This document shows positions 7,871 to 63,415 of a stretch of 64,000 nucleotides of DNA, one piece after another. The first letter of the stretch is position 1. Each line of letters begins with the position of its first letter. Under the pieces are notes generated by a model that was given only the letters and a program-made list of their open reading frames with translations, had not been told where the DNA came from and did no database searches. Source of the stretch: Nageia nagi (taxonomy: Eukaryota > Plantae > Pinophyta); the NCBI GenBank assembly GCA_050084985.1, contig JBITNC010000001.1:145700001-145764000 (forward strand), in the 5' to 3' direction. Position numbers and translations under genes: made by a program.

Positions 7871-7877
7871 GGGGGAG

Positions 7878-8080
7878 TGTTGAAGATTCTAGAGTGATTC
7901 CAAGTTGGTATACTTCCGTATATAGATAGATTGTAAATATATATATTTCCTAGATTAGAGATATGCTCTGCTAGCTAATAGATTTGTAATCCTAAACTTT
8001 AGCATTCCAATTATGTATAGTGGCTATTTATGCCCACAATATTGTAAAGAGCAAAGTATGAATGAAAACCAAGTTTGACT
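7878..8080 (+). repeat. Copia 3' LTR
   Basis: TGTTGAAG...TTTGACT, directly after the PPT and followed by TSD GCTAT. Confidence 0.95.
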
Positions 8081-9224: not shown

Positions 9225-9295
9225 AGTTTGATCATATTCCCAAAGTACAAAATAAAATAATTGATTATTTAGTAAACTAAGCTCTTCATAAGGGA
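9225..9295 (+). mobile_element. Small retroelement RNase H-like remnant
   Basis: Translates FDHIPKVQNKIIDYLVN*A, resembling the F.HIPR..N..AD.LA C-terminal motif of plant RNase H-like domains. Confidence 0.4.
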
Positions 9296-38204: not shown

Positions 38205-38554
38205 CCACTAAAAACCCTAACCACTAACCCAAACCATGAACCACTAATCCTAACCCTAACCACTAACCCTAATCCTAACCACTAAACCTAACCTGAACAC
38301 TAACTCTATTAAGGTATTATTTAGTATTAATACATAATTTTATAATAATTTATTTATAATTATATTATTAATATCTAATTTTATTTTATTAATACCTAAC
38401 CCCTAATCATAACCCTAACCTTAATGCTAAGCTTATGACTAACCCTATTAAGGTATTATTTAATATTAATATCTAATTTTAATATAATTTATTTCTATTA
38501 TATTTAATATCAAATTTTATTTTATTAATACATAAGCCCTAACCCTAATCCTAA
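38205..38554 (+). repeat. Degenerate telomere-like tract (CCCTAA/CCACTAA) interleaved with a ~137-bp AT-rich duplication; left flank of the LTR array
   Basis: ccctaaccactaacccaaacc...cctaaccctaaccactaaccctaatcctaacc. The block 'ctattaaggtattatt...ttattaatac' occurs at both ~38306 and ~38445. Confidence 0.85.
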
Positions 38555-41520
38555 TGTAACAACCCACCCAATGACACTAGTCAACCTTGAACATTATGGA
38601 AGGTGTAAATGATATCATATTTGAACTATTACTATGTGATGATTAATTTTAAGTGAAAATATGTATTGTTTGTATTAAGTTGATATTGGATTTGAAATTT
38701 TATGATGCATGTAATAGGTTACTGAAAGATGAAAGGAGCAATCAAAGACCCAACAAACCAAAGGTGAATTAGTGATGGGAACAAAAGGGTATGAGAAGGA
38801 AATGATTAGCGTTGAATCGTTTACACACCCTATGACCATCGTAGATCATGTAGTTGCATGTAGAATAATTTTTATGACTATCAATTTTTTGATGAAATTG
38901 TATTTGATAATGTGTGTGGGTTAATCTTTCCCTACAGGATGAGGTGAACATCACAGGTAAAGGTATGTTTTTCTTATTTTGTATTTTTGAAATTTAAAAT
39001 TGAAATGGACGTAAAAAGTAATATACCTTATTTAAATTTGATAATTTATACAAGGCTATAAAAATAAATTAAAAAAAAAAATTAAAATGAGTGCCCATAC
39101 TATTTCTACATGGGGTTAATAGTAAAAACACTATTAGAAAAAGACTACAGTCACCTTGTGGTGTTACAAAATATTTAATGGGTAGAAAAATAATAGAGTA
39201 ATGACCCTACATAGTTTTGTTTTCTTATGTTAGGTATGGATAATAGTTGGTATTAATTTGTTAGTTAATAAAAAATATTTCAAAATATTTAATACCATTT
39301 CAATCATCAATAACTTTAAGAGAACTTACCCCAAAAATTATTAAAGGTGTGAGGAGATATCCATTTGAATACACTTGGACCTCCTTGGCTATAAATAAAG
39401 GAGTGAAAACTTTAGCTAATCATCTACCTATCTATATTTTATTATTTCATTCTTATTATTCTTAAGCTTGGATGTAGAGTTACATGAAGAAAAAAGTCTC
39501 TCTTCCCTCTTCAAGTCAAGGTGCATTATTTTACATTCTTTTTGCATAATTAAAGTAGTCCTATTTTTGAGGTATTTAATGAGTTTTATGAACATAAAGA
39601 AGTAAGATTTTCTTTTGTTATTCTCTTTTATTTATATGTAGGGGTAAAAATGTTTATGTACAAATTGTATTATATATTTTATGATATTTTAAAGAGATTA
39701 ATCAAATATTTATTCTTATGCCTTTAGTTAGAAATTAATAAATTTATTTTGACATGAATTTTATTAAATTTCTAATATGATGTTTATCATAATGTTTGCT
39801 AAAGTTTTATAGAAATAATTATTATTAGAAATGTTGTACCATTTGAAAATACATAGTGGTTATTTTATTTAAAGGTTGGCACCATGTCTTTTTCTTTAAA
39901 AAATAAAGGAATGAGATTTTCTTTTATTATTGTCTCTTTATTTAGATGTAGGATTGAAACATTTCACATACAAATTGTATTATATATTTTATGATATCTA
40001 AGGTGATTAGTCAAATATTTCTCCTTATGTCTTTATCTAAAGTTTAATGAATTTATTTTGACATAAATTTTACTAAAGTTTTAATATGATGTTTATCACA
40101 ATGTTTGATAAAATTGCATAGAATTAATTGTTGTTAGAAGTGTTGTACCCTTTGAAGAGATAATGATTATTTTATTTAAAGGTTGGTACCATGTTTTTTT
40201 TTTTTAAATGTAAAGGAGTAGGATATTTTTTTATTTGTTTTTATTTATTTAGATGTAGGGGTGGAAAAGTTTATGTACAAATTGTATTACGTATTTTATA
40301 ATATTTTAAGGAGACTAGTCAAATATTTCTCCTTATTTCTTTAACTAGAGTTTAATAAATTTATTTTGATATTAATTTTATTAAAGTTCTAATATGATGT
40401 TTAGTAAAAAAATATTATTAAATTCAAATGAAAGTAAAAAAATATGAATTACTAAAAATATTTTTTTTTATTATTATCTAAGTTTGATAATTAAACTAAG
40501 TAATATCTAATGAGGCAATAAATATGTTTAATATTTTTAATAACTAATTAAAGTACTCTTTAGAATCTTGTATTAAATAAACTATGGTTTTAAGATTATG
40601 ATATTGGTATAATATTTAGTAAAATAATTCAAACTGTACCAATTACATTAATTAATTAATAAGGTATCCAAGACCTTATTGTGAATGATTTAATTATTTA
40701 AGTTGAATTAATTATAGGGTAAATAAATAATAGATCAATGTACATTGACCAAGGAAAAAAGATAATTTCTCTTGAGGTCTATAGTTAAATTCATTTAAAT
40801 AATGGTCAAGTTTAAAAAGGTTTATTCTAATCCTCCTCCCTCCTAGTACTCGATCCATTCAGCAAGCTCCAAGGGCATGTTCAATGCTCAAAGATCGATA
40901 GAGATGTTTGATGGTTGATACAATGGTCAAAACCATTTGACATGAAAAAATTTGAATTACAAACTCATTAGATATGAAATAGTATGATTTTTCAAAAATA
41001 TCACATTAGTGATTAAATGGGTTATTTTATATTATATTAATTCAATGATTATATTATATGAAATAGTATGATTTATCAATATATTATATTATACTATATT
41101 AAAATATATTGATCATAAGAGATAATTTGAAAATACTATGGAAAATAATTTTGATTATTTGAGACTATTATATGATCTAAATCATAATATTTCTCGAACA
41201 TTGATTAGCACTTAAACTAGCAATATTAAACCTTTACAACATAATAAGTACAACTTCTCAAGATTAAGGATATGATAAATAAGTCCAAATAAAATAAGGG
41301 TACAATCATTAGGAGTATCCACTCACAAGCGAGGATAAGAATGCTTGGTGAATGAACCCTTATACTTAAAAAGAAAGGATGAAGACTAAATAAATTTGGT
41401 AAGGTATCAATATGTAATACATGTAGGATATAAGTCTATTAATAGTAAACCTAATGAATTGAATAGATTGAAAAAATATTTGGTCCTAAATTTAGGGGTT
41501 TTAAATGGAGTAACGTTACA
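38555..41520 (+). repeat. Array LTR1 (2966 bp)
   Basis: TGTAAC...GTTACA, followed by PBS TGGTATTAGAGC at 41522-41533. Confidence 0.93.
39390..39397 (+). promoter_or_regulatory. Putative LTR TATA box (equivalents at ~46434, ~52976, ~59897)
   Basis: GGCTATAAATAAAG is conserved at the same relative position in all four LTRs (GGTTATAAATAAAG in LTR4). Confidence 0.6.
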
Positions 41521-44500
41521 TTGGTATTAGAGCAAGTTTTCCATTAGGAACTAGGGAAAAGTAGTAAGTAAAGAGTGATCCTAATTTATTCCACATCATG
41601 TAAGAAACATGAAGATATAACAAGATGGTATGACCTTAGACTTGGCTACTTATAGAGTCAAATATATAATCGAACATAGATGATATATTATCATACTATG
41701 GTTTATGGACTTTGAAAATCAATGACACTATAAGGTTGGAAAAGGAAAAAGTTGAACTTCAACAAATTTGATGCTAAGAATTATCCAAGAAAACTAAAGA
41801 AAGGTATCTCTCCCCTACAAAGCAAATCATCAATCAGATTGCTAGGAGGAATAAGTAACTAGCAAAAATAGAATGAGATTCAAGGCCCATAGTGGTAAGG
41901 AATAGGTTTGAAAAAGGAGCTATTTTTGCAAATGACATTATAAGTGAAACAAGAGCTCTCCATGATGATTTTTGATGGAGAATGTGAACTTGAAGACACT
42001 ATAAATATTAAGAGTATGATTCTTCTTCCTATGGAAGAAAATCTTATTCAGATTACACCTCCACCTATGCTTAGGCTAAACCATGAAATGAACTTATGGA
42101 TAATAACTGAAAGTTTAAATGCCATGGAAGCTAATGTACACATAAAAGAGTTACATTTCATTGAAGGGATAAAGTACATCATGAATTAGGTTCAAAAATA
42201 TGTTTTATCATACTTTGTAATAGAATATTTTATTAATAAACTTCTTATTTTGTTTGGAATGTAACAAGGTGAATTTTGAACACATTGTAAATGTATATGT
42301 CATTTATTTCAATATGGCAGGTAAAATAAAATTTAGAAAGGGAAGAAAAGGTCAAAAGAAAGTAAAAAAAATTACTAATAACCTTATGGAAGTAAAAGAG
42401 GATACCACCTTGCAAAGTTTCCTAAACTTATAGAAGGAAAAAGAAAAGAAAAAGCTAAAAGAAGTAGCCACTTCAAGAAAGGGAAATAAAATGATGATCA
42501 TCAAACCTAGTGCAAAACAAGATTTTCCTCTCTTATATGGAAGAAATGTTCCTACCCTAACTCTTGAAATCATTGATTACCTTCAAGATAGGAGTGGAAA
42601 AATATTATTGTCTAATGAGGAGACTAAACAAATGATCATTGAGAAAGATCCCACTAGTAAATGAGGATGAAAAGAGCAGAAGGAACCATTTTATGTACTA
42701 AATAATATTAAATCCTTCCTAAATGTATTATTCATTGTCCCTTTTGTGAAATAGAAGTATCTTCTTTTTAAATACATAAAAAGTTTTAATATTAAATAAG
42801 AGTGGATGTATTGTAAAGATTTGAACTTTATTATTAGTTTCTATCCATAAACCCAATGGCTAGTTATCTTAGTCAGATGATTTTGAATTAGCATAGTACA
42901 ATCTATTGATTGGTAATTTGAAATTGAAGGATTGTAAAACTTGATATGGAGAGCTATATACATGGGGATCATGAACATAGGACATTACATTTGGAGAAAT
43001 GGATTGAAAAATGATAAATGAGAAAAATAAATGAGAAAGAACCCAATTTCCTTATCATCTTAAAACTGCAAAGGAATATGTAGTTTTCCAAGGGAGACTT
43101 TGTTGCTAAAGCATCCATGAGATAGTAAGAGGTCCTAACCTTACTCCTGGTGAGATTGAAGATGGACCCATATAAGCTAATATTTGTATCAATAGTGCAT
43201 TATAAGGTGTAAGTAAAATTACCCTCCAAGTGAGACTAGGATAGAAAAATAACCAAATATAGTAGAATAAATGCTCCTCAATTTCAATTTGGATAATCAC
43301 ACAACAACCAAAGTTGTTCAATGGATAGATAGTAATAATGGCTAGATCTGGAAAAAAAAGAAAACCCATTGCCTTTCATGAACACCATGATAGGAAATCA
43401 TAAATCCCATGATGAATAATAGTTTTTTGAATTCCATCCAAAAGAGTAGTGAGGTGTGCAACAAGATGATATCTTCTATGATTCACCATTTTTCATTTTT
43501 CAATGCACCAAAACCAAGAAATCCTACTTATAAAAATAACATCTACCTAGATAGATGATAACTAATAAATGATAAATGGTATACAAAAATACTCAAATGA
43601 GTGGATGATAAGAGAATTTACATTAAATATCCACTAAAGAATTATGGATGATGAGAAGCCCTACTCTCAAAAGCATATTTAAAAAGATACTAAGGGAAAT
43701 ATTGGATGATATTATGGCAAATAAAAATGCATGATATGACACTACCTTTATATGTACAATGTGACATCTCAACAAAAAGGCATTAATACTTCTTAGATGA
43801 CTTTTCTTATGAAATTATAGTGAAAAAAAATTTAGTTGAAAAATACTAAAGAATAGATAAAGCATCATCAATAGGATCATGAGGAATGTGAAAAAATTTA
43901 GAATACCACTTGTTCAGAGAGAAATAAATTAATGATTAAGCTCATGAAACAAGAATGAAAGATGATTAATCAAATTTAAATTGTGTAAGAATAGAAATTT
44001 TCATATCTTAGTGCCTTTATGCAAGAAATAGAAATGTGAAAAACATAGGCACAAAGTTATGAACAATTATTGTTTGAACATGGCATTCATGTAACATCGA
44101 AGTCACTCAATGATAAGGGTGAAAATGTATCTCTAATGCAGAGTCAAATGGGAGAAAGTCATCATTTTTTTGAACTATTAATTGATATAAATAAATGATT
44201 ATTGATAATAAGTACTAAAAATAATTATTTAGTATCATACATTTAAAAAAAAATATGAAAAGTAGAAAAATTCTTAAAATGCTAATGATTATTTGCCTAT
44301 CTTTTAGGTTTACTATAAAAATTTAATGGGAAATCTTTAATCAATTCCTTATATATATATAGACCTTACAAAGATAGGTTAAAAAAGAAATTTTTGATGA
44401 CATTAAAAGTGCATTTATATGCCAATAATTGATCATCAAAGCAAAATGAAGAGAATCTCTTTGGATTTAAAGAGATACTCTAAATTGAAAACTGATCATG

Positions 44501-45622
44501 TTGATGATCGAGTAAGTTTAGTTGGTCATTTTAAACAAAAGTTCTAACTTATTCAAGAAATATTTGAAAGAAATTGAGTTTTTGATAGAAATTTTTGAAG
44601 CAAACTTGACTTTTATCTTAGTTTACGCTAAATGTATTCTCAAAATATGGTAATAAATCCAAATAAAGAAAGTACAGGTGATGTTGAACTTTTTATGTAA
44701 GTACAAATAGAGTTATATTCTTTGATAATGACTATGGTATTATTGTTTTAAAGCAACAATGATGATTTGATTTGAATTTATTGTTCATTTTCTTTTGAAA
44801 AATGACTTTTTGAAATAGTATTATTGATGATACTTGTTTTGAATGAAAAAATAAGAGGATATGAATTGATATGTTTGATTCAAATGTTATGTGCTTAAGA
44901 TCTTGCTTTAATGTTATTATAGTGTACATATCATATGAATAAAAGTGATATAATATATGATTCAAAATATTAGGTGAGGATTTGTTGAAATGATGATAAC
45001 CACCATGATATGGAAGTTTTTGCTTCAAAAATACATTTGGATTCTTAAGATATGGGCAATGGAGCTCGAACCACTGGGGATACTAATCGATAGTTATGGG
45101 CAAGTTAGTTATCTTACCTAAGGAAAAGAGGTAGTAACCAAGAAATTTGTACTATACTAAATGAGGATATATGTTGTAGCCATTTCTTTATCATGGATTA
45201 ATGTTTGGGAATGATTAGTACTATGGAGGCAATGTGTATTATTCATAGTTTAGTGAAAAATATGTTGTGCATATGACCTCATTTTGGATTAGCACTATCT
45301 TAGGTGATATGCACCCCAAGCTGAAACTAAAACACTAACACTATGACCAAATAGCCTACTGTAGTTGACTAGTTTACAGATAGCAATAGTGGTATCATGT
45401 GAACTCTAGAAATGAAGTGGTTGATGAATTTCGGTAGTTGATCAATTTAACCCACTTAAGGGTCAACCAGCCATTGATATCAACTCAAGTTAGATCATCC
45501 TAATTTCCCTTGAAAATATTGAATCTAGTGTAGTAAGTTATGTCACCATGAATTGTGATCCCAAAAAAGTAATAAGAGAAGAAAGAAACACAAAGGACTA
45601 TGTTAATCTTAAGGGGGGAGTA
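41521..45622 (+). mobile_element. Array internal domain 1 (4.1 kb, no intact ORF)
   Basis: Lies between the PBS and PPT AAGGGGGGAG (45611-45620); colinear with 49122-52570 and 54922-59052. Confidence 0.9.
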
Positions 45623-48600
45623 TGTAACGACATAGCTAATGGCACTAGTTGACCTTGGATATTATCAAGGGTGTAAATGATATCATATTTGAACTATTAC
45701 TATGTGATGATTAATTTTAAATAGAAATATTTATTATTTATATCAAATTGATGCTAGCTTTGAGATTTTATGATGCAAGTATTAGGTTACTACAAGATGA
45801 AAGGAGTAATTAAAGACCTAATGAACCAAAGGTGAATTGGTGATGGGAACAAAAGGTTAAGAGGAGGAAATGATTGGAATTGAATCATTGAAACACCCTA
45901 TAACCATCAAAATCATTTATTTACATGTAGAATAATTGTTATGACTATCAATTTCTCGATAAAATTGTATTTTCCAATGTGTATAGATTAATTTTGTCCT
46001 GTAGTATGAGGTGAGCACCTTTGATTTGTATTTTTGAAATTTGTATTCAAAATGGAGGGAAAAAAAGATATAATTTATTTAAATTGATAATTTATATAAG
46101 GTTATAAAAATTAATTTAAAAAAAAATTAAAATAAGTGCCCATACTATTGCCACATGGGGTTAATAGTAAAAACTCTATTAGAAAAAGACTAAGGTCACC
46201 TTATGGTATTATAAGATATTTAATGGATAGGAAAATAATAGAGTAATAATCTTACTTAGTTATTTTTTCTTATGTTAGGTATGGATAATAGTTGGCACTA
46301 ATTTATCAATTAATAAAAAAAATTTAAGATATTTAATACTATTTCAATCATCAATAATTTTAAGTAAACTTACCCCAAAAATTATTAAAGATGTGAGCAG
46401 ATGTGAATTTGGACACTCATGGACCTCTTTGGCTATAAATAAAGAGGTGAAAACTTAAGTAAATCATCTACCTATCTATCTTTTATTATTATATTCTTAT
46501 TATTCTCAAGCTTGGTTGTAGAGTTACTTATTTTTGAGGTAGTTAATGAGTTGTATCAAAGTAAAGAAGTGGAATTTTGTTTTGTTATTGTCCTTTTTAT
46601 TTAGATGTAGCAGTGAAAAATTTTATGTACAAATTGTATTATGTATTTTATGATATTTTAAGAAGATTAATCAAATATTTCTCCTTATATCTTTAGCTAG
46701 AATTTAATAAATTTATTTTGATATGAATTTTATTAAATACCTAATATGATGTTTATCATAATATTTGCTAAAGTTTTATAGATTTAATTATTGTTAAAAA
46801 TGTTGTACCATTTGAAGAGATATAATGGTTATTTTATTTAAAAGTTGGTACCATATTTTTTTCTTTAAAAAGTAAAGGAATGAGATTTTCTTTTATTATT
46901 ATCTTTTTGTTTAGATGTAGAAGTGAAAAATTTTACATACAAATTATATTATGTATTTTATGATATTTTAAGAGATAGTCAAATATTTCTCTTTATACCT
47001 TTAGCTAAAATTTAATGAAATTATTTTGATATGAATTTTATTAAAATCTTAATATGATATTTATCATAATATTTGATAAAGTTTCATAGAATTCATTGTT
47101 ATTAGAAGTATTATACCCTTTGAAGAGATAATGGTTATTTTATTTAAAGGTTGGTACCATATCCTTTTCTTTATAAAGTAAAGGAGTGAGATTTTCTTTT
47201 ATTATTTTTCTTTTATTTACATGTAGGTGTGGAAAATTTTATGTACAAATTGTATTATGTATTTTATGATATTTTAAGGAGATTAATCAAATATTTCTCC
47301 TTATTTCTTTAGCTAGAGTTTAATGGATTTATTTTGACATGAATTTTATTAAAATCTTAATATGATGTTTAGTAAAAAATATTATTAAATTCAAGTGAAA
47401 GTAGAAAAAGATAAATTAATAAAAATATATATTTTTGTTATTATCTAAATTTATCAATTAAACTAATTAGTATCTAATGAGGTGATAAGTATTTTTAATA
47501 TTTTTAATAAGTAATTGAAGAACTCTTTAGAATCTTGTATTAAATAAACTATGGTCTTAAGATTATGATATTGGTATAATATTTAGTAAAATAATTCAAA
47601 TGGTACCAATTACATTAATTAATTAATAAGGTATCCAATACTTTATTATGAATGATTAAATTATAGCTTAAATAAATAATAGATTAATATACATTGATAA
47701 AAAATAGAGATAATTTCTTTTAAAGTTTGTAGTTAAATTTATTTACATAATGGTCAAATTTAAAAAGAGTTGTGCTGATTCTCCTCCCTCGTAGTACTTT
47801 ATCCTTACATGTAGGGGTGGAAAATTTCATGTACAAATTGTATTATGTATTGTATGACATTTTAAGGAGACTAGTCAAATATTTCTCCTTATTCTTTTAG
47901 CTAGAGTTTAATGGATTTATTTTGATATGAATTTTATTAAAATATTAATATGATGTTTACTAAAAAATATTATTAAATTCAAGTGAAAGTAGAAAAAAAT
48001 GAATTAATAAAAATATATATTTTTATTATTATCTAAATTTATTAATTAAACTAATTAGTATCTAATGAGGTGATAAGTATTTTTAATATTTTTAATAAGT
48101 AATTGAAGAACTCTTTAGAATCTTGTATTAAATAAACTATGGTATTAAGATTATGATATTGGTATAATATTTAGTAAAATAATTCAAATGGTACCAATTA
48201 CATTAATTAATTAATAAGGTATCCAAGACTTTATTGTGAATAATTAAATTATATTTTAAATAAATAATAGATTAATATACATTGACAAAAAAAAAGATAT
48301 AATTTCTTTTAAAGTCTGTAATTAAATTCCTTTACATAATAGTCAAATTTAAAAAGGGTTATACTGATTCTCCTCCCTCGTAGTACTCTATCTACCATAA
48401 AGTTGCAAGGGGATGTTCGATGCTCCAAGATCAATGGAGATATTCGATGATTGATACAATGGTCAAAACCATATGATATGACAAAATTTGAATTACAAAC
48501 TCATTGGATACAAAATAGTATGATTTTTCAAAAAGATTCTATTAATTATTTAATGGATTATATTATATTATATTAATTTATTAATTATATTGTATGAAAT

Positions 48601-49121
48601 AGTATGATTTATCATTATATTATATTATATTATATTATGTTATGTTATGTTATATTATATTATATTGATCATAAGGGAAATGTTAGGAACCATTTAGGAT
48701 TAAATGGGATAATTTGAAAATACTATAGGAAATAATTTGGATTGTTTGAAGTTGTTATAGGATCTAAATTATAAGATTTCTTGAACATTGATTAACACCT
48801 AAACTAGTAATATCAAACCTTTATAGCATAACAAGTACATAATCTCAAGATTAAGGATACAATAAATAAGTTCAAATAAAATTAGGTTACGATCATTAAG
48901 AGTATCTGCTCGCAAGTGAGGATAAGAATGCTTGGTGAATGAACCTTTATACTTAGAAAGAAAGGATGAAGACTAAATAAAGTTGATAAGGTATCAATAT
49001 GTAATACATGTAGGATATAATTCTATTAATAGTAAACTTAGTGAATCAAAAAGATAAAAAATAAATATATTTGGTATTAAATTTAGAGGTTTTAAATGGT
49101 GAAGGATGGAGTAGCATTACA
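45623..49121 (+). repeat. Array LTR2 (3499 bp, includes a ~588-bp internal duplication)
   Basis: TGTAAC...ATTACA; PBS TGGTATTAGAGT at 49123; 47217-47804 is repeated at 47805-48393. Confidence 0.93.
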
Positions 49122-52100: not shown

Positions 52101-52570
52101 TTTAGAAAGATACTTTGAATTAGAAAAAGATCATGTTGATGATCAAATAAGTTCAGTTGGTCATTGTAAAAAATGTTCTAACTTGTTCAAGAAATCTTTG
52201 AAAGAAATTGAGTTTTTGATAAAAAATTTTGAAGCAAACTTGACTTTTATCTTAGTTTGCACTAAATGTATTCTCAAAATATGGTAATAAATCCAAATAA
52301 AGAAAGTACAGGTGATGTTGAACTTTTTATGTAAGTACAAATAGAGTTATATTCTTTGATAATGATTATGTTATTATTGTTTTAAAGCAATAATGATGAT
52401 TTGATTTGAATTTATTGTTCATTTTCTTTTGAAAAATGACTTTTTGAAATACTATTATTAATGATACTTGTTTTGAATGAAACAATAAGAGGATATGAAT
52501 CGATATGTTTGATTCAAATGTTATGTGCTTGAGATCCTGATCTAATGTTATTATGGTGTACATCTCACAT
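49122..52570 (+). mobile_element. Array internal domain 2 (3'-truncated)
   Basis: Homology to internal domain 1 stops at the equivalent of ~44937 and runs directly into LTR sequence. Confidence 0.88.
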
Positions 52571-52572
52571 CA

Positions 52573-54921
52573 ATTTTTGAAATTCAAATTTGAAATGGAG
52601 AGAAAAAGAAATATACCTTATTTAAATCTAATAATTTATATAAGGTTATAAAAATATATAAAAAAAAAAATTAAAATGAGTGCCTATACTATTGCCACAT
52701 GGGACTAATAGAAAAACACTATTAGAAAAAGATAGGTCAACTTGTGGTGTTACAAGATATTTAATGGGTAAGAAAATAATAGAGTAATGACACTACTTAG
52801 TTTTATTTTCTTATATTAGGTATGGATAATAGTGGGCACTATTTTTTCAATTAATAAAAAAGGTTTCAAGATATTTAAAACCATTTCAATTATCAACAAC
52901 TTTAAGAAAACGTATCCCAAAAATTTTTAAAGGTGTGTAAAGAGATCCATATGGACACACTTGGACCTCCTTGGCTATAAATAAAGGGGTGGAAACTTAA
53001 GCAAATCACCTACCTATCTATCCTTTATTATTTTATTTTTGTTATTGTCAAGTTTGGGTGTAGAGTTATTTGAAGAAAAGAAGTCTCTCTTTTCTCTTCA
53101 AATCAAAGTGCATTATTTTATAGTCTTTTTGCCTAATTAAAGTAGTCCTATTTTTGAGGTATTTACTGAGTTGTATGAAAGTAAAGAAGTGGAATTTTCT
53201 TTTGTTATTTTTACTTTTGTGAAAAATTTTATGTACAAATTGTATTATGTATTTTATGATATTTTAAAGTGATTAATCAAATATTTCTTCTTATACTTTT
53301 AACTAGAATTCAATGAATTTATTTTGATATGAATTTTATTAAATTTATAATATGATTTTATCATAATATTTGTTAAAATTTTATAGAATTAATTATTGTT
53401 AGAAATGTTATACCATTGGAAGAGACATAGTGGTTATTTTATTTAAAAGTTGGTACCATGTCTTTTTCTTTAAAAAGTGAAAGAGTGACATTTTCTTTTG
53501 TTACTGTCCCTTTACTTAGATGTAGAGGTGAAAAATTTTACATACAAATTATATCATATTTTTTATGATATTTTAAGGAGACTAATCAAATATTTCTCCT
53601 TATACCTTTAGCTAAAGTTTAATGAATTTATTTCAACATGAATTTTATTAAAGTCTTAATATATATGTTTGATAAAGTTTCATATAATTAATTATTGTTA
53701 GAAGTTTTGTACCCTTTGAAGAGACATAGTGGTTATTTTATTTAAAGGTTGGTATCATGTCTTTTTCTTTAAAAAGTAAAGGAGTGGGATTTTTTTTTGT
53801 TATTTTTCTTTTATTTAGATGTAGGGGTGGAAAATTTTACCTACAAATTATATTATGTATTTTCTAATATTTTAAGGAGACTAATCAAATGTTTGTCCTT
53901 ATATCTTTAGCTAAAGTTTAATAAATTTATTTTGCCATGAATTTTATTAAAATATTAATATGATATTTATCATAATATTTGATGAAGTTTCATAAAATTA
54001 ATTATTGTTAGAAATGTTGTACCCTTTGACGAGATATAGTGGTTATTTTATTTAAAGGTTGGTATGATATCTTTTTCTTTAAAAAGTAAAGGAGTAGAAT
54101 TTTATTTTATTATTTTTCCTTTATTTAAATGTAGGGGTGAAAAATTTCATGTACAAATTGTATTATATATTTTATGATATTTTAAGAAGACTAGTCAAAT
54201 ATTTCTCCTTATTCCTTTAGCTAGAGTTTAATAAATTTATTTTAACATAAATTTTATTAAAGTCTTAATATGATATTTAGTAAAAAAATATTATGAAATT
54301 CAGGTGAAAGTGGACAATGATGAATTAATAAATATATATTTTCTTGTTATTATTTAAATTTGTTAATTAACTAATTAGTATCTAATAAGGTGATAAGTAT
54401 GTTTAATATTTTTAATAAGTAATTTAATCTTTTTGAAATCTTGTATTAAATTAATTAATAAGGTATATTATATTATATTGATCATAAGGGAAATGTTAAG
54501 AATCCTTTGGGATTAAATGGGATAATTTGGGAAGTACTTTGGATTGTTTGAGATTGTTATATGATCTAAATTGTAAGATTTCTTGAACATTGATTAACAC
54601 ATAAACTAGCAATATTAAACCTTCATAACATAGCAAGTACACCTTCTCAAGATTAAGGATACGATAAATAAGTCTAAATTAAATAATTTTATGATCATTA
54701 AGAGTATTCACTTGCAAATGAGGATAAGAATGCCTAGTGAATGAATCTTATTACTTAGAATGAAAGGATAAAGACTAAATAAAGTTGATAATGTATCAAT
54801 ATGTAATACATGTGGGATATAAGTATTTTAATAGTAAATCTAGTGAATTAAATAGATAGATAAAATATATTTGGTCCTAAATTTAGAGGTTTTAGATGGT
54901 GAAGGATGGAGTAGCATTACA
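52573..54921 (+). repeat. Array LTR3 (5'-truncated, internally deleted)
   Basis: Starts at the equivalent of LTR1 ~38984 and ends GCATTACA; PBS TGGTATTAAAGT at 54923. Confidence 0.88.
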
Positions 54922-57900
54922 TTGGTATTAAAGTGAGTTTTCAATTAGAAATAAGGGAAAAGTAGTAAGTAAAGAGTGATCCTAACTTATTCCTTATCTT
55001 GTAGGAAATTTGAAGATATAACAAGATGATATGGCCTTAGAATTGGCTACTTATAGAGTCATATATCCTATCAAATATAGATGATACATTATCATACTAT
55101 GGTTTATGGACTTAAAAGTTAATGACACTTTGAGGTTGGAAAATGAAAAATCTAAACTTCAACAAATTCGATGCCAAGAATTATCCAAGTGAACTAGAGA
55201 AAGGCATCTATCCCCTGTAGAACAAATCATCAATCATACTACTAGGAGGATTAAGTACCTAGCAAAAATAGAATAATATTCAAAGTCTATAGTGGTAAGG
55301 AATAGGTTTGAAGAAAATGCTATTTTTGCAGATGACATTATAATGAAATAAGAGCTCTCCATGATGATTCCAATAGAGAATGGAACTTGAAAACATTATA
55401 AATATTGAGAGTAAGATTCTCCTTTCTATGGAAGAAAATTGTATTTAGATTACACCTCCACCTATGGTTAGGCTAAACCACAAAATGAACTTGTGAACAA
55501 TAAATAAAAGGTTAAATGCAATGGGAGCTAATGTACACATAAAAGAGTTACATTTCATTGAAGGGCTAGTGTACATCATGAATTAGGTATAAAAAGATGT
55601 TTTATCATATTTTGTAATAGAAAATATTATAAATAAACTTATTATTTTGTTTGGAATGTAACAAGGTGAATTTTGAACACATTTTAAATATGTATGTCAT
55701 TTATTTTAGTATGGTAGGCAAAACAAAATCTATAAAGGGAAAGAAAGGTCAAAAGAAAGTAAAAGAATAAATTACTAATAACTTTGTAGAAGAAAAGATG
55801 ATACCACCCTACAAAGTTTCTTGAACTTATAGAAGGAAAAAGCTACAAGTAGCCACTTCAAGAAAGGAAAATAAATTGATAATCATCAAACCCAGTAATG
55901 AGATTTTTCTCTCTTTTATGGAAGAAATGTTCCTAAACTTACTCCTAAAATCATTAATTACCTTAAAGATAGGAGTAAAAAAATATCATTATTTGATGAG
56001 GAACTCGAAGAAATGATTAGTGAGGAAGATTGCACTAGTAAATAAAGATGAAAAGAGTGGAAGGAATCATTTTATGTACTAAATAATACTAAATACTTCC
56101 TAAATGTATTGTTATCCCTTTTACAAAATAGAAGTCTCTTCTTTTGAAATACATAAAAAGGTTTACTATTTTATAAGAGTGGATGGATTACAAAGATTTA
56201 AACTTTATTATTGGTTTTTAATGATAAACCCAATGACTAGTTATCTTAGTTAGATGATTCCAAATCAGCATAGTATAATCTATTAATTGATGATTTGAAA
56301 TTAAAATATTTTGAAGCCTAATCCAAAGACCTATATTTAAGGGGATTAGGAACATAGGATATTACATTTGGAGAAATGGATCAAAAATGATAAAATGAGA
56401 AAAATAGATGAGAATGAACCCAATTTCATTATCATCTAGAAAATGCAAAGGAATATGTAATTTCCTAAGGGAGATGTTGTTGCCAAAGCATCCATGAGAT
56501 AGTAAGCGATTTTGAGCTCACTCCTGGTGAGATTGAGGATGGATCCATAGAATCCAAGAGTCATATCAATAGTGTATTATAAGATGCAAATAAAATTACC
56601 CTCCAAGTGAGACCATGATACAAAAATAAGCAAATATAGCAGAGTAAATGCTCCTCAATTTCAATTTGGGTAATCACATAATAATCAAAGTTGTTCAATA
56701 GATAGAGGGTAATAATGGATAGATCTTGATGAAGAAGAAAACCCATTGCCTCTAATGAACACCATGATAATAAATTGTAAATCCCATAATGAATAATATT
56801 TTCTTGCATTCCATCTAGAAGAGTGGTAAGGCACACAACAAGATGATATCTCCTATGATTCAACATAATTCAATTTTCAATGCATCCAAAACCAAGAAAT
56901 CCTACCTATAAAAAAATCTACTTATATAGGACATAACTAATAAATGATAAATGGTATACAAAAACACTCGAATGAGTGCATGAAGAGAGAATTCACATTA
57001 AATATCCATTGAAGAATTATGAATTATGAGAAGCCCTACTCTCAAAAGTATATATAAAAAGATACTAAGGGAATTATTGAAAGATATTATGTCAAATAAA
57101 TGCACAATATGACACTACATTTATATGTACAATGTGACATATCAACAAAAAAGAGTTAATACTTCTTATATGACTTTACTTATGAAATTACATTAAAAAA
57201 ATTATTAAAAACAATAATACAGGCTATCATAGAGAATGAATATCTGTGATAATAATTGAAAAATGTTGAAGAACATATAAATCATCTTCGAAAGGAGTAT
57301 GAAGAATGTGAAATAATTTTGAATACCACTTGTTCAGAGAGAAATAAGTTAATGATTAAGATCATTAAACAAGAACAAAAGTTGATTCATCAAATTCAAA
57401 GTGTGCAAGAATAGGCATTTGCACACCTTAATACCTTTCTACAAGAAATAGAAAAGTGGGAAATGCAAGCATAAAGGTATGAACATTTGTTATTTCAACA
57501 TGGCATTCATGTAACATCAAAGTCACCTGATGATAAGGGTGAAAATGTATCTCTAATGGAGAGTCAAATGGGAAAATTCCCCATTTTTCTAAACTATTAA
57601 TCAATTTAAATAAATGATTATTGATAATGAGTAATACAAATAATTGTTTAGTTTTCATACATATTTTCAAAAATATGAAAAGTAAAAAATTTTATAAAAT
57701 GGTAATGATTGTTTGCTTATCTTTTAGGTTTACTATAAAGCTTTAACGAGAAATCTTTAATGAATCTCTTATTTATATATAAACCTTACAAAGATAGGTC
57801 AACAAAGAAATTTTTGATGATATTCAAAGTGCATTTCTATGCCAACAATTGATCATCAAAGTAAAATGAAGAGAATCTCTTTAGATTTAGAGAGATACTC

Positions 57901-59052
57901 TAAATCAAAAAAAGATCATGTTGATGATCAAGTAAGTTTAATTGGTCATTGTAAAAAAAGTTCTAACTTGTTCAAGAAATGTTTGAAAGAAACTTAGTTT
58001 TTGATAAAAAATTAAAAGCATACTTGACTTTTATCTTAGTTTGAGATAAATGTATTTCCAAAATATGGTAATAAACCCTAATAAAGAAAGTACAGGTGAT
58101 GTTGAATTTTATATTTAAGTACAAATATAGGTATAATCTTTGATAATGACTATGCTATTATTATTTTTAAGCTATAATGATGATTTAAGTTGAATTTATT
58201 GTTCATTTTCTTTTGAAAAATGACTCTTTGAAATAATACTATTGATGATACTTATTTTGAATGAAAAAATAAGAGGATAAAAATCAATTTGTTTGATTTA
58301 AATGTTATGTACTTGAGATCCAGATCTAATGTTAATATGGTGTAAATGTCACATGAATAAGTGGGAGTTAACATATATGATTCAAAAGATCAAGTGAAGA
58401 TCTATTGAAATGATGATAACCACCATGATGTGGAAGTTGTTGCTTTCAAAAGACATTGGGATTATCAAGATATGGTGATGAGAGCTCCAAACATTAGGGA
58501 TACTAACTAATAGTTAGGGGCAAGTTAGTTATCTTACCTTAAGAAAAGAGGTAGTAATATAGAAATGTGTACTATACCAGATGAGGGTATAAGTTGTAGT
58601 TATTTATTTATCATGGATTAATGATTAGGAATGATGGTTATTATAGGAGTGATGCACTTTATCTATGATTTAGTAGCAAATATATCATGTGTGTATGACA
58701 TCATTTTGGATTAGCGCTATCTTGGGTGATATAGGCCCCAAGATGAAATTGAAACACTAACACTAGTTGAATATATAGTATATAGCAATGGTGGTATCAC
58801 ATTATTACATCAAACCTAATTCATGGAGAGTTATGGTGATGAAATATAGAAATGAAGGGGTTAATCAATTTTGATAGTTGATCAACTTAACCCACCTGGT
58901 CATTGATCCAAACTCAAGTTGGATTATCTTAATGTACCTTGAAAATATTAAATTTGATGTAGTAATTTATGACACCATGAATTTTGATATTATGAAATTA
59001 ATAGGAGAAGAATGAAACATAGAGGAATATGTTAATCCTAATGGGGGGAGTA
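54922..59052 (+). mobile_element. Array internal domain 3
   Basis: Runs from the PBS to PPT GGGGGGAG (59043-59050); colinear with internal domain 1. Confidence 0.9.
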
Positions 59053-62000
59053 TGTAACAACCCACCCAATGGCACTAGTCAACCTTACACATTATCAAGG
59101 GTGTAAATGAAATCATATTTGAATTATTACTATATGATGATTAATTTTAAGTGGAAATATATATTATTTGTGTCAATTTGATGTTGTTTTCAAGATTTTA
59201 TGATGTAGGTAATAGGTTATTGTAAGATGAAAGGAGCAATCAAAGACCCAACAAACTAATGGTGAATCGGTGACTAGAATAAAAGGATAAGAGGATGAAA
59301 TAATTGGTGTTGAATAAATAACACACCATATGACCATCATAAATCATGTATTTGCATGCAAAATAATTGTTATGACTATTGATTTCTCAATAAAGTTGTA
59401 TTTACCAATATGTGTGGATTAATCTTGCCCTGTAGGATGAGGTGAGCGTCATAAGTAAAGGTGTGTTTCCCTTATTTTGTATTTTTGAAATTCAAATTTG
59501 AAATGGGGGAAATAGGAATATACCTTATTTAAAATTGAAACTTTATATAATTTTATAAAAATAAATAAAAAAAATAAAAAATTAAAATTAAAATGAGTGC
59601 CCATACTATTTCTACATGGGGCTAATAGTAAAAACACTATTAGAAAAAGACTAAGGTCACCTTATGGTTTTATAATATATTTAATGTGTAAAAAAATAAT
59701 GGAGTAATGAACCTACTTAGTTTTGTTTTTTTATGTTAGGTATAGATAATAGTTGGCACTAATTTGCTAGTTAATAAAAAAAGTTTCAAGATATTTAATA
59801 CCATTTCAATCATCAACAACTTTAAGAAAACCTACTTCAAAAAAATATTAAAGGTGTGAGGTGACATCCATTTGGACACACTTTGACCTCTTTGGTTATA
59901 AATAAAGTAGTAAAAACTTAAGCAAATGACCTACCTATCTATCTTTTATTATTTCATTCTTGTTATTCACAAACATGGGTGTAGAGTTACCTGAACAAAA
60001 GAAGTCTCTCTTCCCTCTTCAATTCAAGGTGCATTATTTTACATTATTTTTTTCTAATTAAAGTAGTCCTATTTTTGAAGTATTTAATGAGTTGTGTGAC
60101 AGTAAAAAAGTGGATTTTTTTCTTCTCACTTTTATATAGATGTAGGGGTGGAAAATTTTATGTACAACTTGTATTATGTATTTTATGATATTTTAAGGAG
60201 GTTAATCAAATATTTCTTCTTATACCTATAGTTAGAATTTAATGAATTTATTTTGATATGATTTTTGTTAAATTTATAATATCATATTTATCATAATATT
60301 TACTAAAGTTTTATAGAATTAATTATTGTTAAAAATATTGTACCATTTGAAGAGACATAGTGGTTATTTTATTTAACGGTTGGTACCAAGTCTTTTTATT
60401 TAAAAAGTAAAGGAATGGGATTTTCTTTTGTTATTATCCCTTTATTTAGATGTAGGGGTGAAAAATTTTATGTACAAATTATATTATATATTTTATGATA
60501 TTTTAAAGAGATTAATCAAATATTTCTCCTTATGGTTTTAGCTAATGTTTAATGAATTTATTTTGATATGAATTTTATTAAAATCTTAATATGATATTTA
60601 TCATAATATTTGATAAAGTTTTATAGAATTAATTATTTTTATAAGTGTTGTACTCCTTGAAAAGAAATAGTGGTTATATTATTTAAAGGTTGGTACCATG
60701 TCTTTTTCTTTAAAAAGTAAAGGAATGGCATTTTCTTTTGTTATTATCTCTTTATTTAGATGTAGGGGTGAAAAATTTCACTTACAATTTGTATTATGTA
60801 TTTTATGATATTTTAAGAATACTAGTCAAATATTTGTCCCTATGCCTTTAGCTAAAGTTTAGTGAGTTTTTTTTATATGAATTTTATTAAAACCTTAATA
60901 TGATATTTATCATAATGTTTGATAAAGTTTCATAGAATTAATTATTGTTATAAGTGTTGTACCCTTTGAAGAGACATAGTGATTATTTTATTTAAAGGTT
61001 GGTACCATATCTTTTTCTTTAAAAAATAAAGAAGTCAAATTTTCTTTTATCATTTTCCTTTTATTTAGATGTAGGGGTGAAAAATTTCATGTACAAAGTC
61101 TATTATGTATTATATGATATTTTAAGAAGACTAGTCAAAATATTTCTCCTTATGCCTTTAGCTAGTGTTTAATAAATTTATTTTGATATGAGTTTTATTA
61201 AAATACTGATATGATATTTATTAAAAAAATATTATTAAATTCAAGTGAAAATGAGGAAATATAAATTAATAAAAATATATTTTCTTGTTATTATCTATGT
61301 TTGTCAATTAAACTTATTAGTATCTAATGAGATGACAAGTATGTTTAATATTTTTAATAAGTAATTCAAGAACTCTTTTGAATCTTGTCTTAAATAAAGT
61401 ATGGTTTTAATATTATGATATTGGTATAATGTTTAGTAAAATAATTCAAATGGTACCAATTGCATTAGTTAATAAAAAAGGCATCCAAGACCTTATTATG
61501 AATGATTTAATCATTTACGATGGATTAATTATAGGGTAAATAAATTATGGATTAATGTACATTAACCAAGGAAAAGAGATGATTCCTTTTATGGTTTATA
61601 GTTAAATTCATTTTCATAATAGTGAAGTTTAAAAAAGATTGTCCTAATCCTCTTCCCTCCTAGTTTTCGATCGACCCACCAACTTTCAAGGGGATGTTTG
61701 ATGCTCGAAGATCAATATAGATGTTCAAAAGTTTATACAATGGTCAAGACCATATGATATGAATAAATTTGAATTACAAACTTATTTAATATGATATAGT
61801 ATGATTTTTCAAAAATATCCTATTAATGATTAAATGAGTTGTATTATATTATGTTAATTCATTAAAGGTTATTTTGTATTTATGTCATGTTAATATGGTA
61901 AATGGAAAGTAGATGAGTTGTACTTCAATGAATTAGTTTTATTATATAAATGATTAATAAGTTTTTATTTTTATTTAGAATAATATTATGATGGTTTAAT

Positions 62001-63168
62001 GCTATAAATAGTGATAATTACATGAATAAGAGTAGGAATTAATAGTTATTATTTCATGATCAGTAGTGGGTAGTATAAATCGATTTAAGTAGATGATTTT
62101 ACCAAGAATTCTAAAGAAATAGATTATTTAGGTTATTAATTCTAACAAAATCCAAAACTATCCCAAACACTTAGAAATAATCCTAAATTTGAACTACTAA
62201 GGTTCCAAATTACAATTTGTGATCAGTAGGGAAAGTTTAGGAAACCTTAGGATCAAAATAGGTACAAATGAAACCCAATGGTAATAAATGGAATCCTTTG
62301 GGATAAATATGAATTTTTTAGATAAGAATGTCAAAATATTGACAATAAATGTTTAAGGATAAAACCTAATCTAACTTAGAATTAGAATCTACTTGGTTAG
62401 TGAATGAATTGTTAACATTGAGATTTAATGAGTTTATGGTTTACGTAGTAAATTAATGAATGAAATGGGGAACTAAGGTTAGAAAATGTTACCTAAGTAC
62501 GTGACCTTACATATGAAACCAAAGTGGGTTATGGCTTTTATTTATTTGCAAGTTATAAAATTCAATTAATTAAATTTACAATGATCAAATGAATATTTCT
62601 CAATTGCTTGTACAACAGTCTTAAGGATCGATAATAAATAAGAATCCTAAATAAATTCACTATGATTCCAATGTTTTAGAAAAGGATCCCATATTAGTCT
62701 TATGGACCCAAATTTATATCATAAGGGAAATGTTAGGAACCCTTTGAGATTAAATGGGATAATTTGGGAATACTATGGGAAATAATTTGGATTGTTTGAG
62801 ATTGTTATAGGATCTAAGTCGTAACATTTTTTGAACATTGATTAACACATAAACTAGAAATATTAAACCTTTACAACATAACAAGTACACCTTCTCAAGA
62901 TTAAGGATATGGTAAATAAGTCCAAATAAAACAAGGGTAGAATCATCAGGAGTATCTGCTTGCAAGCAAGGATAAGAATGCCTATGAATGAACCCTTGTA
63001 CTTAGAAAGAAAGGATGAAGACTAAATAAAGTTAATAATGTATCAATATGTAATACATGTGGGATATAAGTCTATTAATAGTAAACCTATTAAACTGAAT
63101 AGATAAGAAAAAAAATTTTAGTCCTAAATTTAGGGGTTTTAGATAGTGAAAGATGGAGTAGCATTACA
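59053..63168 (+). repeat. Array LTR4 (4116 bp, longest copy)
   Basis: TGTAACAACCCACCCAATG...GCATTACA followed by TSD CCTAA, with no PBS after it. Confidence 0.93.
60100..61220 (+). repeat. ~310-bp tandem repeat inside the LTR (about 3.5 copies here; about 2.5 in LTR1)
   Basis: Anchor GATGTAGGGGTG(G/A)AAAATTT at ~60139, 60449, 60759 and 61068. Equivalents at ~39636/39945/40252, ~46604/46914/47221 and ~53519/53818/54129. Confidence 0.9.
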
Positions 63169-63415
63169 CCTAATCACTAACCACTAACAACTAATCTTAA
63201 CCAATAACCCTCACCATTAACCCTAACCCTAACAAATAATGAATAATCACTAACCACTAACCACTAAACCTAATGCTAGCTACTAAACCTTAACCATTAC
63301 AAACCCTAACAACTAACTACTAACCCTAACCACTAAACCCTAACTACTAACCCTAATTACTAACCCTAATCACTAACCTTAATCACTAACCCTAACCACC
63401 AACAACTAACCTTAA
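63169..63415 (+). repeat. Degenerate telomere-like tract (CCCTAA/CCACTAA/CTACTAA); right flank of the LTR array
   Basis: cctaatcactaaccactaac...ccctaaccctaac...ctaaccctaaccactaaaccctaactactaaccctaa. Confidence 0.9.

Follow-up and report, generated by a model that had tools for sequence, protein, structure and literature searches.

Positions 38555–63168 of the window (the whole 64,000-nucleotide stretch of Nageia nagi DNA analysed here) hold a tandem array of a non-coding LTR retrotransposon, in which four LTRs alternate with three internal domains (LTR-int-LTR-int-LTR-int-LTR). One target-site duplication (TSD), a continuous flank repeat and the lack of internal TSDs support the origin of the array from one insertion. 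This insertion was probably expanded by early unequal LTR-LTR exchange and then underwent neutral decay.

Self-BLAST of the window returned multi-kb direct matches of 82–88% identity. The units begin at 38555, 45623 and 59053, and a further start falls at about 52145, where the sequence is deleted. The whole window contained no further copy of the element. Together with direct reading of the junctions, these matches upheld the alternating layout proposed in the first-pass annotation. The LTRs measure 2.3–4.1 kb (3.0–4.1 kb when intact), the internal domains 3.5–4.1 kb and the units about 7 kb. The features of the array and its flanks are the following:

38213–38554, no strand: left flank, degenerate telomere-like repeat (AACCCT-type) inside a 139-bp higher-order repeat, the insertion target (TRF)
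38550–38554, + strand: left TSD copy, CCTAA, read directly
38555–41520, + strand: LTR1, 2966 bp, TGTAAC...GTTACA, 2.6 subrepeats, carries the ~850-bp deletion with filler
39594–40403, + strand: LTR1 subrepeats, 309-bp tandem units, 2.6 copies (TRF, monomer tree)
41045–41120, + strand: LTR1 filler in place of the ~850-bp segment, (TTATA)n-rich, with a templated second GAAATAGTATGATTT at 41060
41521–45622, + strand: internal domain 1, 4102 bp, non-coding
41522–41533, + strand: PBS 1, TGGTATTAGAGC, 11/12 to TGGTATCAGAGC
45611–45622, + strand: PPT 1, AAGGGGGGAGTA, abuts LTR2
45623–49121, + strand: LTR2, shared, 3499 bp, PPT left and PBS right, 2.6 subrepeats, LTR1-type deletion and filler
47212–47803 and 47798–48392, + strand: LTR2-private 590-bp tandem duplication, copies 94% identical
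49122–52573, + strand: internal domain 2, 3452 bp, 3′ truncated, about 680 bp and the PPT lost
49123–49134, + strand: PBS 2, TGGTATTAGAGT
52574–54921, + strand: LTR3, 2348 bp, first ~430 bp lost in the 1.1-kb deletion, 3.5 subrepeats
54922–59052, + strand: internal domain 3, 4131 bp, non-coding
54923–54934, + strand: PBS 3, TGGTATTAAAGT
59042–59052, + strand: PPT 3, TGGGGGGAGTA, abuts LTR4
59053–63168, + strand: LTR4, 4116 bp, more complete than the other LTRs, with 3.5 subrepeats plus the ancestral ~850-bp segment
61866–62717, + strand: ~850-bp LTR segment, within the array retained by LTR4 only, colinear with the LTR of the L001 copy described below
63169–63173, + strand: right TSD copy, CCTAA, read directly
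63169–63411, no strand: right flank, degenerate telomere-like repeat continued (CTAACCA-type; TRF)

All intact LTR ends carry TGTAAC...GTTACA / ATTACA termini, i.e. TG...CA with short terminal inverted repeats. After the 3′ end of each of LTR1–3 (..TTACA), a T is followed by TGGTATTAGAGC or a more mutated form of it as the PBS, which matches the plant tRNA-iMet PBS TGGTATCAGAGC (PMC7215508) at 9–11 of 12 positions. LTR2 and LTR4 are directly preceded by a PPT (AAGGGGGGAGTA and TGGGGGGAGTA, respectively), giving three tRNA-iMet-type PBS and two PPT in the array. The earlier description of LTR2 as bordered by a PPT (left) and a PBS (right) is correct: AAGGGGGGAGTA stands before it and T plus PBS 2 after it. 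The four homologous LTRs of the earlier description were all found, but LTR3 proved to be 5′-truncated by a deletion of ~1.1 kb across the int2/LTR3 junction, which took away ~680 bp at the end of internal domain 2 together with its PPT, and ~430 bp at the start of LTR3. The remaining differences in LTR length stem from subrepeat number (310 bp; 2.6 versus 3.5 copies), an ~850-bp deletion in LTR1–3 and the 590-bp duplication in LTR2.

A degenerate telomere-like repeat makes up both flanks, which match each other at 76–89%, and it runs on without a break in the reconstructed empty site. The sequence CCTAA, previously named as the sole TSD around the whole array, is indeed present at both outer ends. 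However, it is about 20 times enriched in the flank repeat, so that a chance 5-mer match has a probability of about 1.3%, not 0.1%. The TSD is weakened by the CCTAA-rich target but still backs a single insertion. Read directly, the internal junctions contain neither host DNA nor TSDs. The claim of a LARD-scale tandem array from one insertion is thus borne out by the anatomy, the single TSD and the continuous flanks. The locus should be annotated as a single tandem insertion, now decayed, of a non-autonomous LTR element, rather than as three elements or a satellite.

We searched 20 open pieces of at least 50 aa, from both strands of the three internal domains, and found no significant Pfam family. 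The longest ORF in these domains is 101 aa, in agreement with the earlier statement that no intact gag/pol is present. As a positive control, a Copia remnant elsewhere in the window scored clearly with the same Pfam approach; a very degenerate gag in the internal domains is still conceivable. Neither Rfam (at the gathering score) nor ARAGORN detected an RNA gene in the whole window, and therefore 5S sequence and a Cassandra-like LTR are absent. The element shows the LTR ends, the PBS and PPT and a TSD within the 4–6 bp of LTR retrotransposons. It lacks gag/pol capacity, exceeds 4 kb and has long LTRs and a multi-kb internal domain, as LARDs do. These features support its assignment as a non-coding, LARD-sized LTR retrotransposon, where ‘LARD’ means size and coding class only. 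Kalendar et al. reportedly gave the original description of LARDs in 2004. LARDs resemble the element in having LTRs of 3–4 kb, a PBS and a PPT, an internal domain of ~4 kb that lacks gag/pol, and a high copy number implying trans mobilisation; they were defined in Triticeae with a conserved internal-domain RNA structure, and the likeness here is one of size and coding class (class summarised in PMC7215508 and PMC13570524).

The family is abundant in public data, which were low-coverage short-read contig sets (shares ≤0.14), too short to span the array or to count junction types. Of all parts of the family, these runs contain the 310-bp LTR subrepeats in greatest abundance. The ~850-bp segment is multi-copy in four public runs, with contigs joining it to downstream LTR sequence, and other deletion joints in this region represent LTR variants in the family. 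The high copy number in the four runs implies past mobilisation. An independent family copy, L001, was found on a metagenome contig. It has a PBS identical to TGGTATCAGAGC at 12/12 positions and 1.6 LTR subrepeats, versus 2.6 and 3.5 in the window. L001 is the only other family locus that we saw, and it too has an LTR flanked by PPT and PBS.

Alignments were used to obtain distances, trees and indel maps. Pairwise K2P distances among the LTRs were 0.142–0.193, with 0.164 ± 0.008 for the outer pair LTR1–LTR4, and those among the internal domains were 0.146–0.170, compared with 0.19–0.21 between window internal domains and L001. The units are thus 14–19% diverged. The maximum-likelihood (ML) quartet had end branches of 0.067–0.098 and an inner branch of 0.010 (aLRT 53), i.e. 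a star phylogeny, and the AU test could not separate 12|34 from 14|23. Rooting with L001 gave 3–15 shared-derived sites per LTR subset and 39–51 for the internal domains, which is the level of homoplasy, and these sites showed no positional segregation (Mann-Whitney p = 1.0, ‘123’ versus ‘234’). No crossover point could be mapped with quartet site patterns, ML plus AU, sliding windows or L001 rooting. The last 350 bp of the LTR had a mild 14|23 excess (11 versus 5 and 4) that was not significant (chi-square p about 0.12). In the subrepeat monomer tree, first monomers clustered across LTRs and the others were poorly resolved; subrepeat copy number is a weak marker. Because the LTRs and internal domains form a star phylogeny, the array was complete at or just after insertion, and all units are as old as the insertion.

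These distances also bear on the proposal of the first-pass annotation that a retroelement is turning into a ~7-kb macrosatellite. A macrosatellite consists of many copies kept alike by ongoing exchange or conversion, whereas this locus has three units in a star phylogeny, each 14–19% from the others and with unit-specific deletions. Because there is no homogenisation and no recent growth, the array is a decaying fossil that froze soon after forming, not a nascent macrosatellite.

In LTR1 and LTR2 about 850 bp are replaced by a filler that holds a second GAAATAGTATGATTT 84 bp after the first, and LTR3 has the same right deletion junction, TATTGATCATAAG. LTR4 and the L001 LTR carry the full segment with a single GAAATAGTATGATTT copy; LTR4 61780–62800 and L001 7884–8904 are colinear at 88.4% with 2 gaps. 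From this comparison the ~850-bp segment is ancestral for the family and the deletion is derived in LTR1–3. The outer LTRs are not twins, because LTR1–3 share a deletion and filler absent in LTR4 and L001, and therefore unequal LTR-LTR crossover after integration is favoured over insertion of a concatemer. LTR3 is structurally mosaic, LTR4-like upstream (3.5 subrepeats) and LTR1/2-like downstream (deletion), a polarity expected of an unequal-crossover hybrid.

We infer the following course of events. One copy of a high-copy, non-autonomous LARD-type element would have entered the degenerate telomere-like repeat and produced the CCTAA duplication. This element has LTRs of ~3–4 kb with 310-bp subrepeats, a tRNA-iMet PBS, a non-coding internal domain of ~4.1 kb and a G-rich PPT. 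By the time of integration or very shortly afterwards, its 5′ LTR would have carried the ~850-bp deletion with templated filler and its 3′ LTR not, and the subrepeat number of the two probably differed by one as well. The deletion may have arisen during reverse transcription or just after integration. Unequal homologous exchange, in two rounds between the 3′ LTR on one chromatid or homologue and an upstream LTR on the other, would then have added two LTR-plus-internal units. The new internal LTRs would have taken their 3′ part from the upstream, deleted LTR, which would place the deletion in LTR1–3 and not in LTR4. Exchange presumably ceased as the copies diverged. Neutral decay since then would amount to about 0.08 substitutions per site per copy, the 1.1-kb junction deletion and the 590-bp local duplication.

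Some observations speak against the crossover. The star-like substitution data give neither an order of events nor a crossover point. Since subrepeat number is labile (1.6, 2.6, 3.5), one of the two characters behind the LTR3 mosaic is robust and the other weak. The outer LTRs came to differ in two structural features with no resolvable substitution divergence, which needs very fast events or reverse-transcription errors. Finally, the shared LTR of L001 hints at a family-wide propensity, also explicable by a replication-linked route.

Of the two mechanisms suggested in the first-pass annotation, unequal LTR-LTR recombination fits the LTR1–3 deletion-plus-filler better and concatemer integration is less favoured. 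That the array integrated as one concatemeric cDNA, with its three units already present, seems unlikely. Template switching between co-packaged RNAs could produce such a cDNA, as could read-through transcripts from a tandem master or a one-LTR circle, and the model has been put forward before (PMC1950507, PMC11899658). The star phylogeny, in which the units have diverged as much as the outer LTRs, is the expectation for a simultaneous origin, and the single TSD and the shared LTR at L001 speak for it as well. However, reverse transcription makes outer LTRs identical, whereas LTR1 lacks ~850 bp of LTR4 and shares its deletion-plus-filler with the internal LTRs. To rescue the model, one has to add the conversion of a whole LTR or assume that the tandem source was heterogeneous, and a cDNA of at least 21 kb would need packaging. 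Complex elements made by template switching likewise have at least three LTRs under one TSD, and their diagnostic is the high similarity of the two outermost LTRs (Sabot and Schulman, 2007; PMC1950507); here, LTR1 and LTR4 are no closer than other pairs (K 0.164, within the 0.142–0.193 of all pairs) and differ by the ~850-bp indel. It is similarly doubtful that the family forms shared-LTR arrays habitually by a replication-linked route (read-through or circle-derived multi-unit transcripts, cDNA concatemers) and not by rare chromosomal accidents. This reading draws on the PPT/PBS-flanked LTR in both the window array and L001, and on units and outer LTRs that began diverging together. If it were true, a particle or integration complex would have handled a cDNA of at least 20 kb, and the LTR1–3 deletion would have spread later by conversion.

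We consider it very unlikely that extrachromosomal cDNAs from several family members, one of them with full LTRs and others with deleted ones, recombined through their LTRs before one integration. This would account for a single TSD despite the unlike outer LTRs, a scheme put forward for complex elements of rice (bioRxiv 10.1101/452573), and the family does include LTR variants in this region, seen as other deletion joints in public contigs. Yet a hybrid LTR is then expected to be of upstream type 5′ and downstream type 3′, and LTR3 has the opposite polarity. Equal, star-like distances are unexpected from three different parents, and L001 is more distant from the window internal domains than these are from one another. 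Slightly less probable still is a set of separate insertions from this family, side by side or one inside another, that inter-element recombination fused afterwards, the classical origin of Arabidopsis complex elements (summarised in PMC1950507), since the flanking 5-mers match, the flanks continue one repeat, the junctions lack internal TSDs and host DNA, all units are equidistant and a unique deletion is common to LTR1–3. An assembly artefact expanding a single element into tandem copies is the least probable: the public-read evidence consists of short contigs, none spanning the array, but no assembler can invent units differing by 14–19% with unit-specific indels of 20–850 bp, and contigs at least 99% alike exist in public runs.

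The notion that shared-LTR arrays are known mainly from TRIM/Cassandra elements is outdated, as arrays of large gypsy, sugar beet non-autonomous and BARE1 elements have been reported (PMC11899658, PMC13570524, PMC7215508). Large gypsy elements of rice, Arabidopsis, almond and cotton are reported to form single-TSD tandem arrays commonly (PMC11899658), and barley has about 4600 three-LTR structures of BARE1 (PMC7215508). The TLI loci of the IDENTAM survey (Morales-Diaz et al., 2025, Mob DNA 16:10, PMC11899658) share with the present array the LTR-bounded alternation, the shared internal LTRs and an outer 5-bp TSD with none inside, so that it is a single-insertion tandem array in their sense. 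They are attributed to single insertion, lie far from genes and are enriched in long-LTR elements. In contrast, 28 of 28 curated rice tandems encode retrotransposon protein domains, which the element here lacks, and about 80% of rice tandems have LTRs more than 95% identical, compared with ~85% here. That survey left tandem insertion versus recombination undecided, whereas the shared derived deletion here points to recombination (PMC11899658).

Sugar beet has 97 arrays of 3–21 LTRs from non-autonomous elements of all lengths and LTR sizes (PMC13570524, 2026). Like the present array they are multi-LTR arrays of non-coding elements, in a different species and family; about 71–75% keep TSDs and are read as products of intra-element unequal recombination. 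They are mostly 3-LTR arrays, and the study neither dates an old array nor analyses the polarity of its LTR states (PMC13570524). Cassandra/TRIM arrays resemble ours in their shared LTRs and their PBS type, TGGTATCAGAGC, and the two mechanisms considered here are candidates for them too. However, TRIMs are smaller than 1 kb and Cassandra LTRs carry 5S rDNA (PMC7215508), whereas the units here are ~7 kb with no Rfam match, and Cassandra arrays can be long and dynamic while this one is short and frozen. Tandem TE dimers and LTR subrepeats can seed satellite DNA (McGurk and Barbash, 2018, PMC5932611; Vondrak et al., 2020, PMC7004042), and the 310-bp subrepeats are comparable; unlike these satellites, the 7-kb unit shows neither homogenisation nor any increase past three copies.

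Recent surveys find tandem LTR-retrotransposon arrays to be frequent and polymorphic in plants (PMC11899658). This kind of array, large and non-autonomous elements included, is already well described in plants in papers from 2007 to 2026, and the locus adds one more case; it is a useful worked example, but as one locus it leaves the general picture of array origin unchanged. The question left open in the surveys is whether arrays are inserted as tandems or made later by recombination (PMC11899658). Two records are kept here, a clock, with all units as old as the insertion, and a unique deletion-plus-filler that the three upstream LTRs share and that LTR4 and L001 lack. Together, they argue that unequal exchange between still near-identical LTRs enlarged the array at the DNA level, and that the array then froze.

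Comparison of the window with itself limited the direct-repeat block to 38554-63168, where multi-kb alignments reached 82–88% identity, and detected no sequence related to the array elsewhere in the 64-kb window. The ends and junctions of the array were read directly in the sequence, giving four LTRs that alternate with three internal domains (int1–3) of a non-coding LTR retrotransposon:

38555-41520, + strand, LTR1 (2966 bp)
41521-45622, + strand, int1 (4102 bp)
45623-49121, + strand, LTR2 (3499 bp)
49122-52573, + strand, int2 (3452 bp, 3′ end truncated)
52574-54921, + strand, LTR3 (2348 bp, 5′ end truncated)
54922-59052, + strand, int3 (4131 bp)
59053-63168, + strand, LTR4 (4116 bp)

Intact LTRs start with TGTAAC and end with GTTACA or ATTACA. 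Every LTR 3′ end is followed by a single T and then by TGGTATTAGAGC or a more decayed form, which is the plant tRNA-iMet primer binding site (PBS) TGGTATCAGAGC, as quoted in PMC7215508, carrying a common C-to-T change. A G-rich polypurine tract (PPT) lies directly 5′ of LTR2 and of LTR4. Since LTR2 has a PPT directly before it and a PBS after it, it is shared by two units, which confirms its proposed double role as 3′ LTR of one unit and 5′ LTR of the next. Neither host DNA nor an additional target-site duplication (TSD), named in the first-pass annotation as a sign of nested insertions, was present at any internal junction. Across the int2/LTR3 junction, a ~1.1-kb deletion has removed ~680 bp of int2 together with the PPT of this domain, and also the 5′-most ~430 bp of LTR3; the deletion junction is simple, with microhomology of at most 1–2 bp. 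The array structure is real and its outline had been correctly described, while this deletion, the chance value of the TSD and the causes of the LTR sizes are corrected here.

The TSD around the whole array, CCTAA, sits within a degenerate telomere-like repeat (AACCCT / CTAACCA units) on both flanks:

38213-38554, telomere-like repeat, left flank
63169-63411, telomere-like repeat, right flank

As CCTAA is ~20 times enriched in this repeat and a matching 5-mer at random points of the two flanks has a chance of ~1.3%, not 0.1%, the duplication stands with a weaker case against a chance match. Because the flanks join as one continuous repeat when the element and one CCTAA are removed, a single insertion event is still well supported. 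The left telomere-like repeat belongs to a 139-bp higher-order repeat of alternating telomere-like and AT-rich stretches, and a 63-bp tandem repeat (37518-37664; 2.3 copies, 82% matches) lies just upstream of it.

The reported lack of intact gag/pol agrees with our results. The longest ORF of the array is 101 aa, and among twenty stop-free pieces of at least 50 aa from both strands of int1–3, none matched a Pfam family at threshold or hinted at gag, protease, RT, RNase H or integrase. As a positive control, open pieces from a decayed Copia element in the same window gave clear scores for gag-pre-integrase, rve and RVT_2. This element occupies 3306-8078, and its 201-bp LTRs (3306-3506 and 7878-8078) are 94.5% identical. 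The array copies have each departed by only ~8% from their common ancestor, and the element therefore lacked coding capacity already when it inserted. Its size and lack of genes place it in the LARD (large retrotransposon derivative) class. A Cassandra-like identity was rejected, since Rfam and ARAGORN found no matches in the window.

Logan contigs from four public runs, two of them air metagenomes, were matched to 57401-63400 at a likeness of at least 80%. Thousands of short contigs match across this whole stretch, and thus the family is abundant. Its presence in the air metagenome runs X2 and X5 presumably reflects pollen or debris of an abundant plant. The summed contig depth, which is not a copy number, was lowest in the internal domain, higher in the LTR and by far highest in the 310-bp subrepeat zone (LTR4 59600-61600), exceeding the remainder of the LTR 3–10-fold and the internal domain 10–50-fold. 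This zone may have been amplified independently as a satellite, or the depth may reflect many solo LTRs. A metagenome scan with one 21-mer from the LTR also found the 13.3-kb contig Ga0181464_1001066 (L001):

779-1603, 5′-truncated LTR, followed by a perfect PBS TGGTATCAGAGC
1604-5782, internal domain with a PPT at its end
5783-9283, full LTR (3.5 kb)
9284-10281, second PBS and first ~1 kb of a further internal domain, then unrelated DNA

L001 differs from the window units by K of about 0.16–0.21 and is an independent family copy. Its LTR is shared too, with a PPT on one side and a PBS on the other. The L001 units differ by 7.6% (LTR 3′ end) and 12.2% (internal domain 5′ end), and unrelated DNA lies at both ends. 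L001 could represent a tandem array that was truncated, a concatemer in permuted form or, being a short-read metagenome contig of a repeat family, a chimera.

The LTR sizes of 2.3–4.1 kb have four causes, namely the number of 310-bp tandem subrepeats, an ~850-bp segment, a duplication in LTR2 and the truncation of LTR3. Subrepeat number is labile, with 1.6 copies in L001, 2.6 in LTR1 and LTR2, and 3.5 in LTR3 and LTR4:

39594-40403, subrepeats of LTR1
46558-47371, subrepeats of LTR2
53219-54279, subrepeats of LTR3
60131-61221, subrepeats of LTR4

The private 590-bp tandem duplication of LTR2 (47212-47803 and 47798-48392) is much younger than the array, since its copies are 94% identical. Among the four array LTRs, only LTR4 has the ~850-bp segment. 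LTR4 61780-62800 is colinear with the L001 LTR (88.4% identity, 2 gaps) and public-run contigs connect it with LTR sequence farther downstream, which marks the segment as ancestral. In its place LTR1 and LTR2 have a (TTATA)n-rich filler, which holds a second GAAATAGTATGATTT placed 84 bp after the first; LTR4 and L001 have one copy each. The right junction of the deletion, TATTGATCATAAG, recurs in LTR3, whose left side carries an additional private deletion. Deletion with templated filler happens as a single, unrepeated event, so LTR1–3 inherited it from one LTR.

Reverse transcription makes both outer LTRs from one template. Similar outer LTRs are diagnostic of the template-switch model (PMC1950507), whereas in the array the two outer LTRs are unlike and LTR1 falls with the internal ones. 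The array rather appears to favour unequal exchange after integration, in which a downstream LTR of one chromatid would recombine with an upstream LTR of the other. Every such exchange would leave a new internal LTR with a downstream-type 5′ part and an upstream-type 3′ part, and would never rebuild the last LTR. With the deletion placed in the last (3′) quarter of the LTR, a crossover at most positions would transmit it. LTR3 combines an LTR4-like subrepeat number with the LTR1/2-like deletion, the polarity expected of unequal exchange, though this mosaic is a weak character because subrepeat number is labile. If the deletion and subrepeat loss arose in plus-strand strong-stop synthesis, the 5′ LTR would have been unlike the 3′ LTR at integration, which could explain structural differences between LTRs without substitution differences. 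As exchange requires near-identical partners, this reading also accounts for the early date of all events and for the later freezing of the array.

K2P distances are 0.142–0.193 among the four LTRs (0.164 ± 0.008 for the outer pair LTR1–LTR4) and 0.146, 0.151 and 0.169 among the internal domains. In the ML quartet of the LTRs, the end branches measure 0.067–0.098 and the inner branch, which is unsupported (aLRT 53), 0.010; the AU test did not separate 12|34 from 14|23. With L001 as outgroup, 51, 49 and 39 sites fell to the three possible pairings of internal domains, and only 3–15 derived sites to each LTR subset, with no positional pattern. Much of the shared-derived signal looks like parallel transition decay, judging from changes such as the one at the LTR start, where two copies read ACA instead of ACG. 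These distances and the star-like tree therefore indicate that divergence of the units dates from the same time as that of the outer LTRs. The array was complete by roughly the first tenth of the time since insertion. At the rice LTR rate that Ma and Bennetzen reportedly gave in a 2004 paper, which PMC13570524 cites (1.3e-8 per site per year), its age would be ~6 million years, as an order of magnitude only.

Integration as a concatemer also agrees with the star phylogeny and with L001, a second locus that has a shared LTR, but requires a cDNA of at least 21 kb and, in addition, either that LTR1 was converted in a further step or that the tandem source was heterogeneous. Recombination of free cDNAs before integration (bioRxiv 10.1101/452573) predicts unequal distances among units and a hybrid LTR with polarity opposite to that of LTR3. 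Independent insertions are excluded by the internal junctions, the flanks and the deletion common to LTR1–3, and an assembly artefact is ruled out by the 14–19% unit divergence and unit-specific indels.

The view in the first-pass annotation that shared-LTR arrays are known mainly from small TRIM/Cassandra elements is outdated. Single-TSD tandem arrays with shared internal LTRs are reported to be frequent and polymorphic in rice (266 in a pangenome) and also to occur in Arabidopsis, almond and cotton, mostly as large gypsy elements (PMC11899658). Sugar beet has 97 non-autonomous arrays of all lengths and LTR sizes, with 3–21 LTRs, about 71–75% of which keep TSDs (PMC13570524), and for barley BARE1 about 4600 three-LTR structures are on record (PMC7215508). 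LTR identity exceeds 95% in about 80% of the rice tandems, compared with an identity of ~85% in the window array, whose age is slightly unusual beside them. The suggestion that the element is turning into a macrosatellite fails, because the array has just three units, which are not homogenised and continue to decay. The kind of structure is already known, and the array is a worked example of modest value for post-integration unequal exchange; its informative deletion, which is slightly unusual, bears on the mechanism left open by the tandem-array papers.
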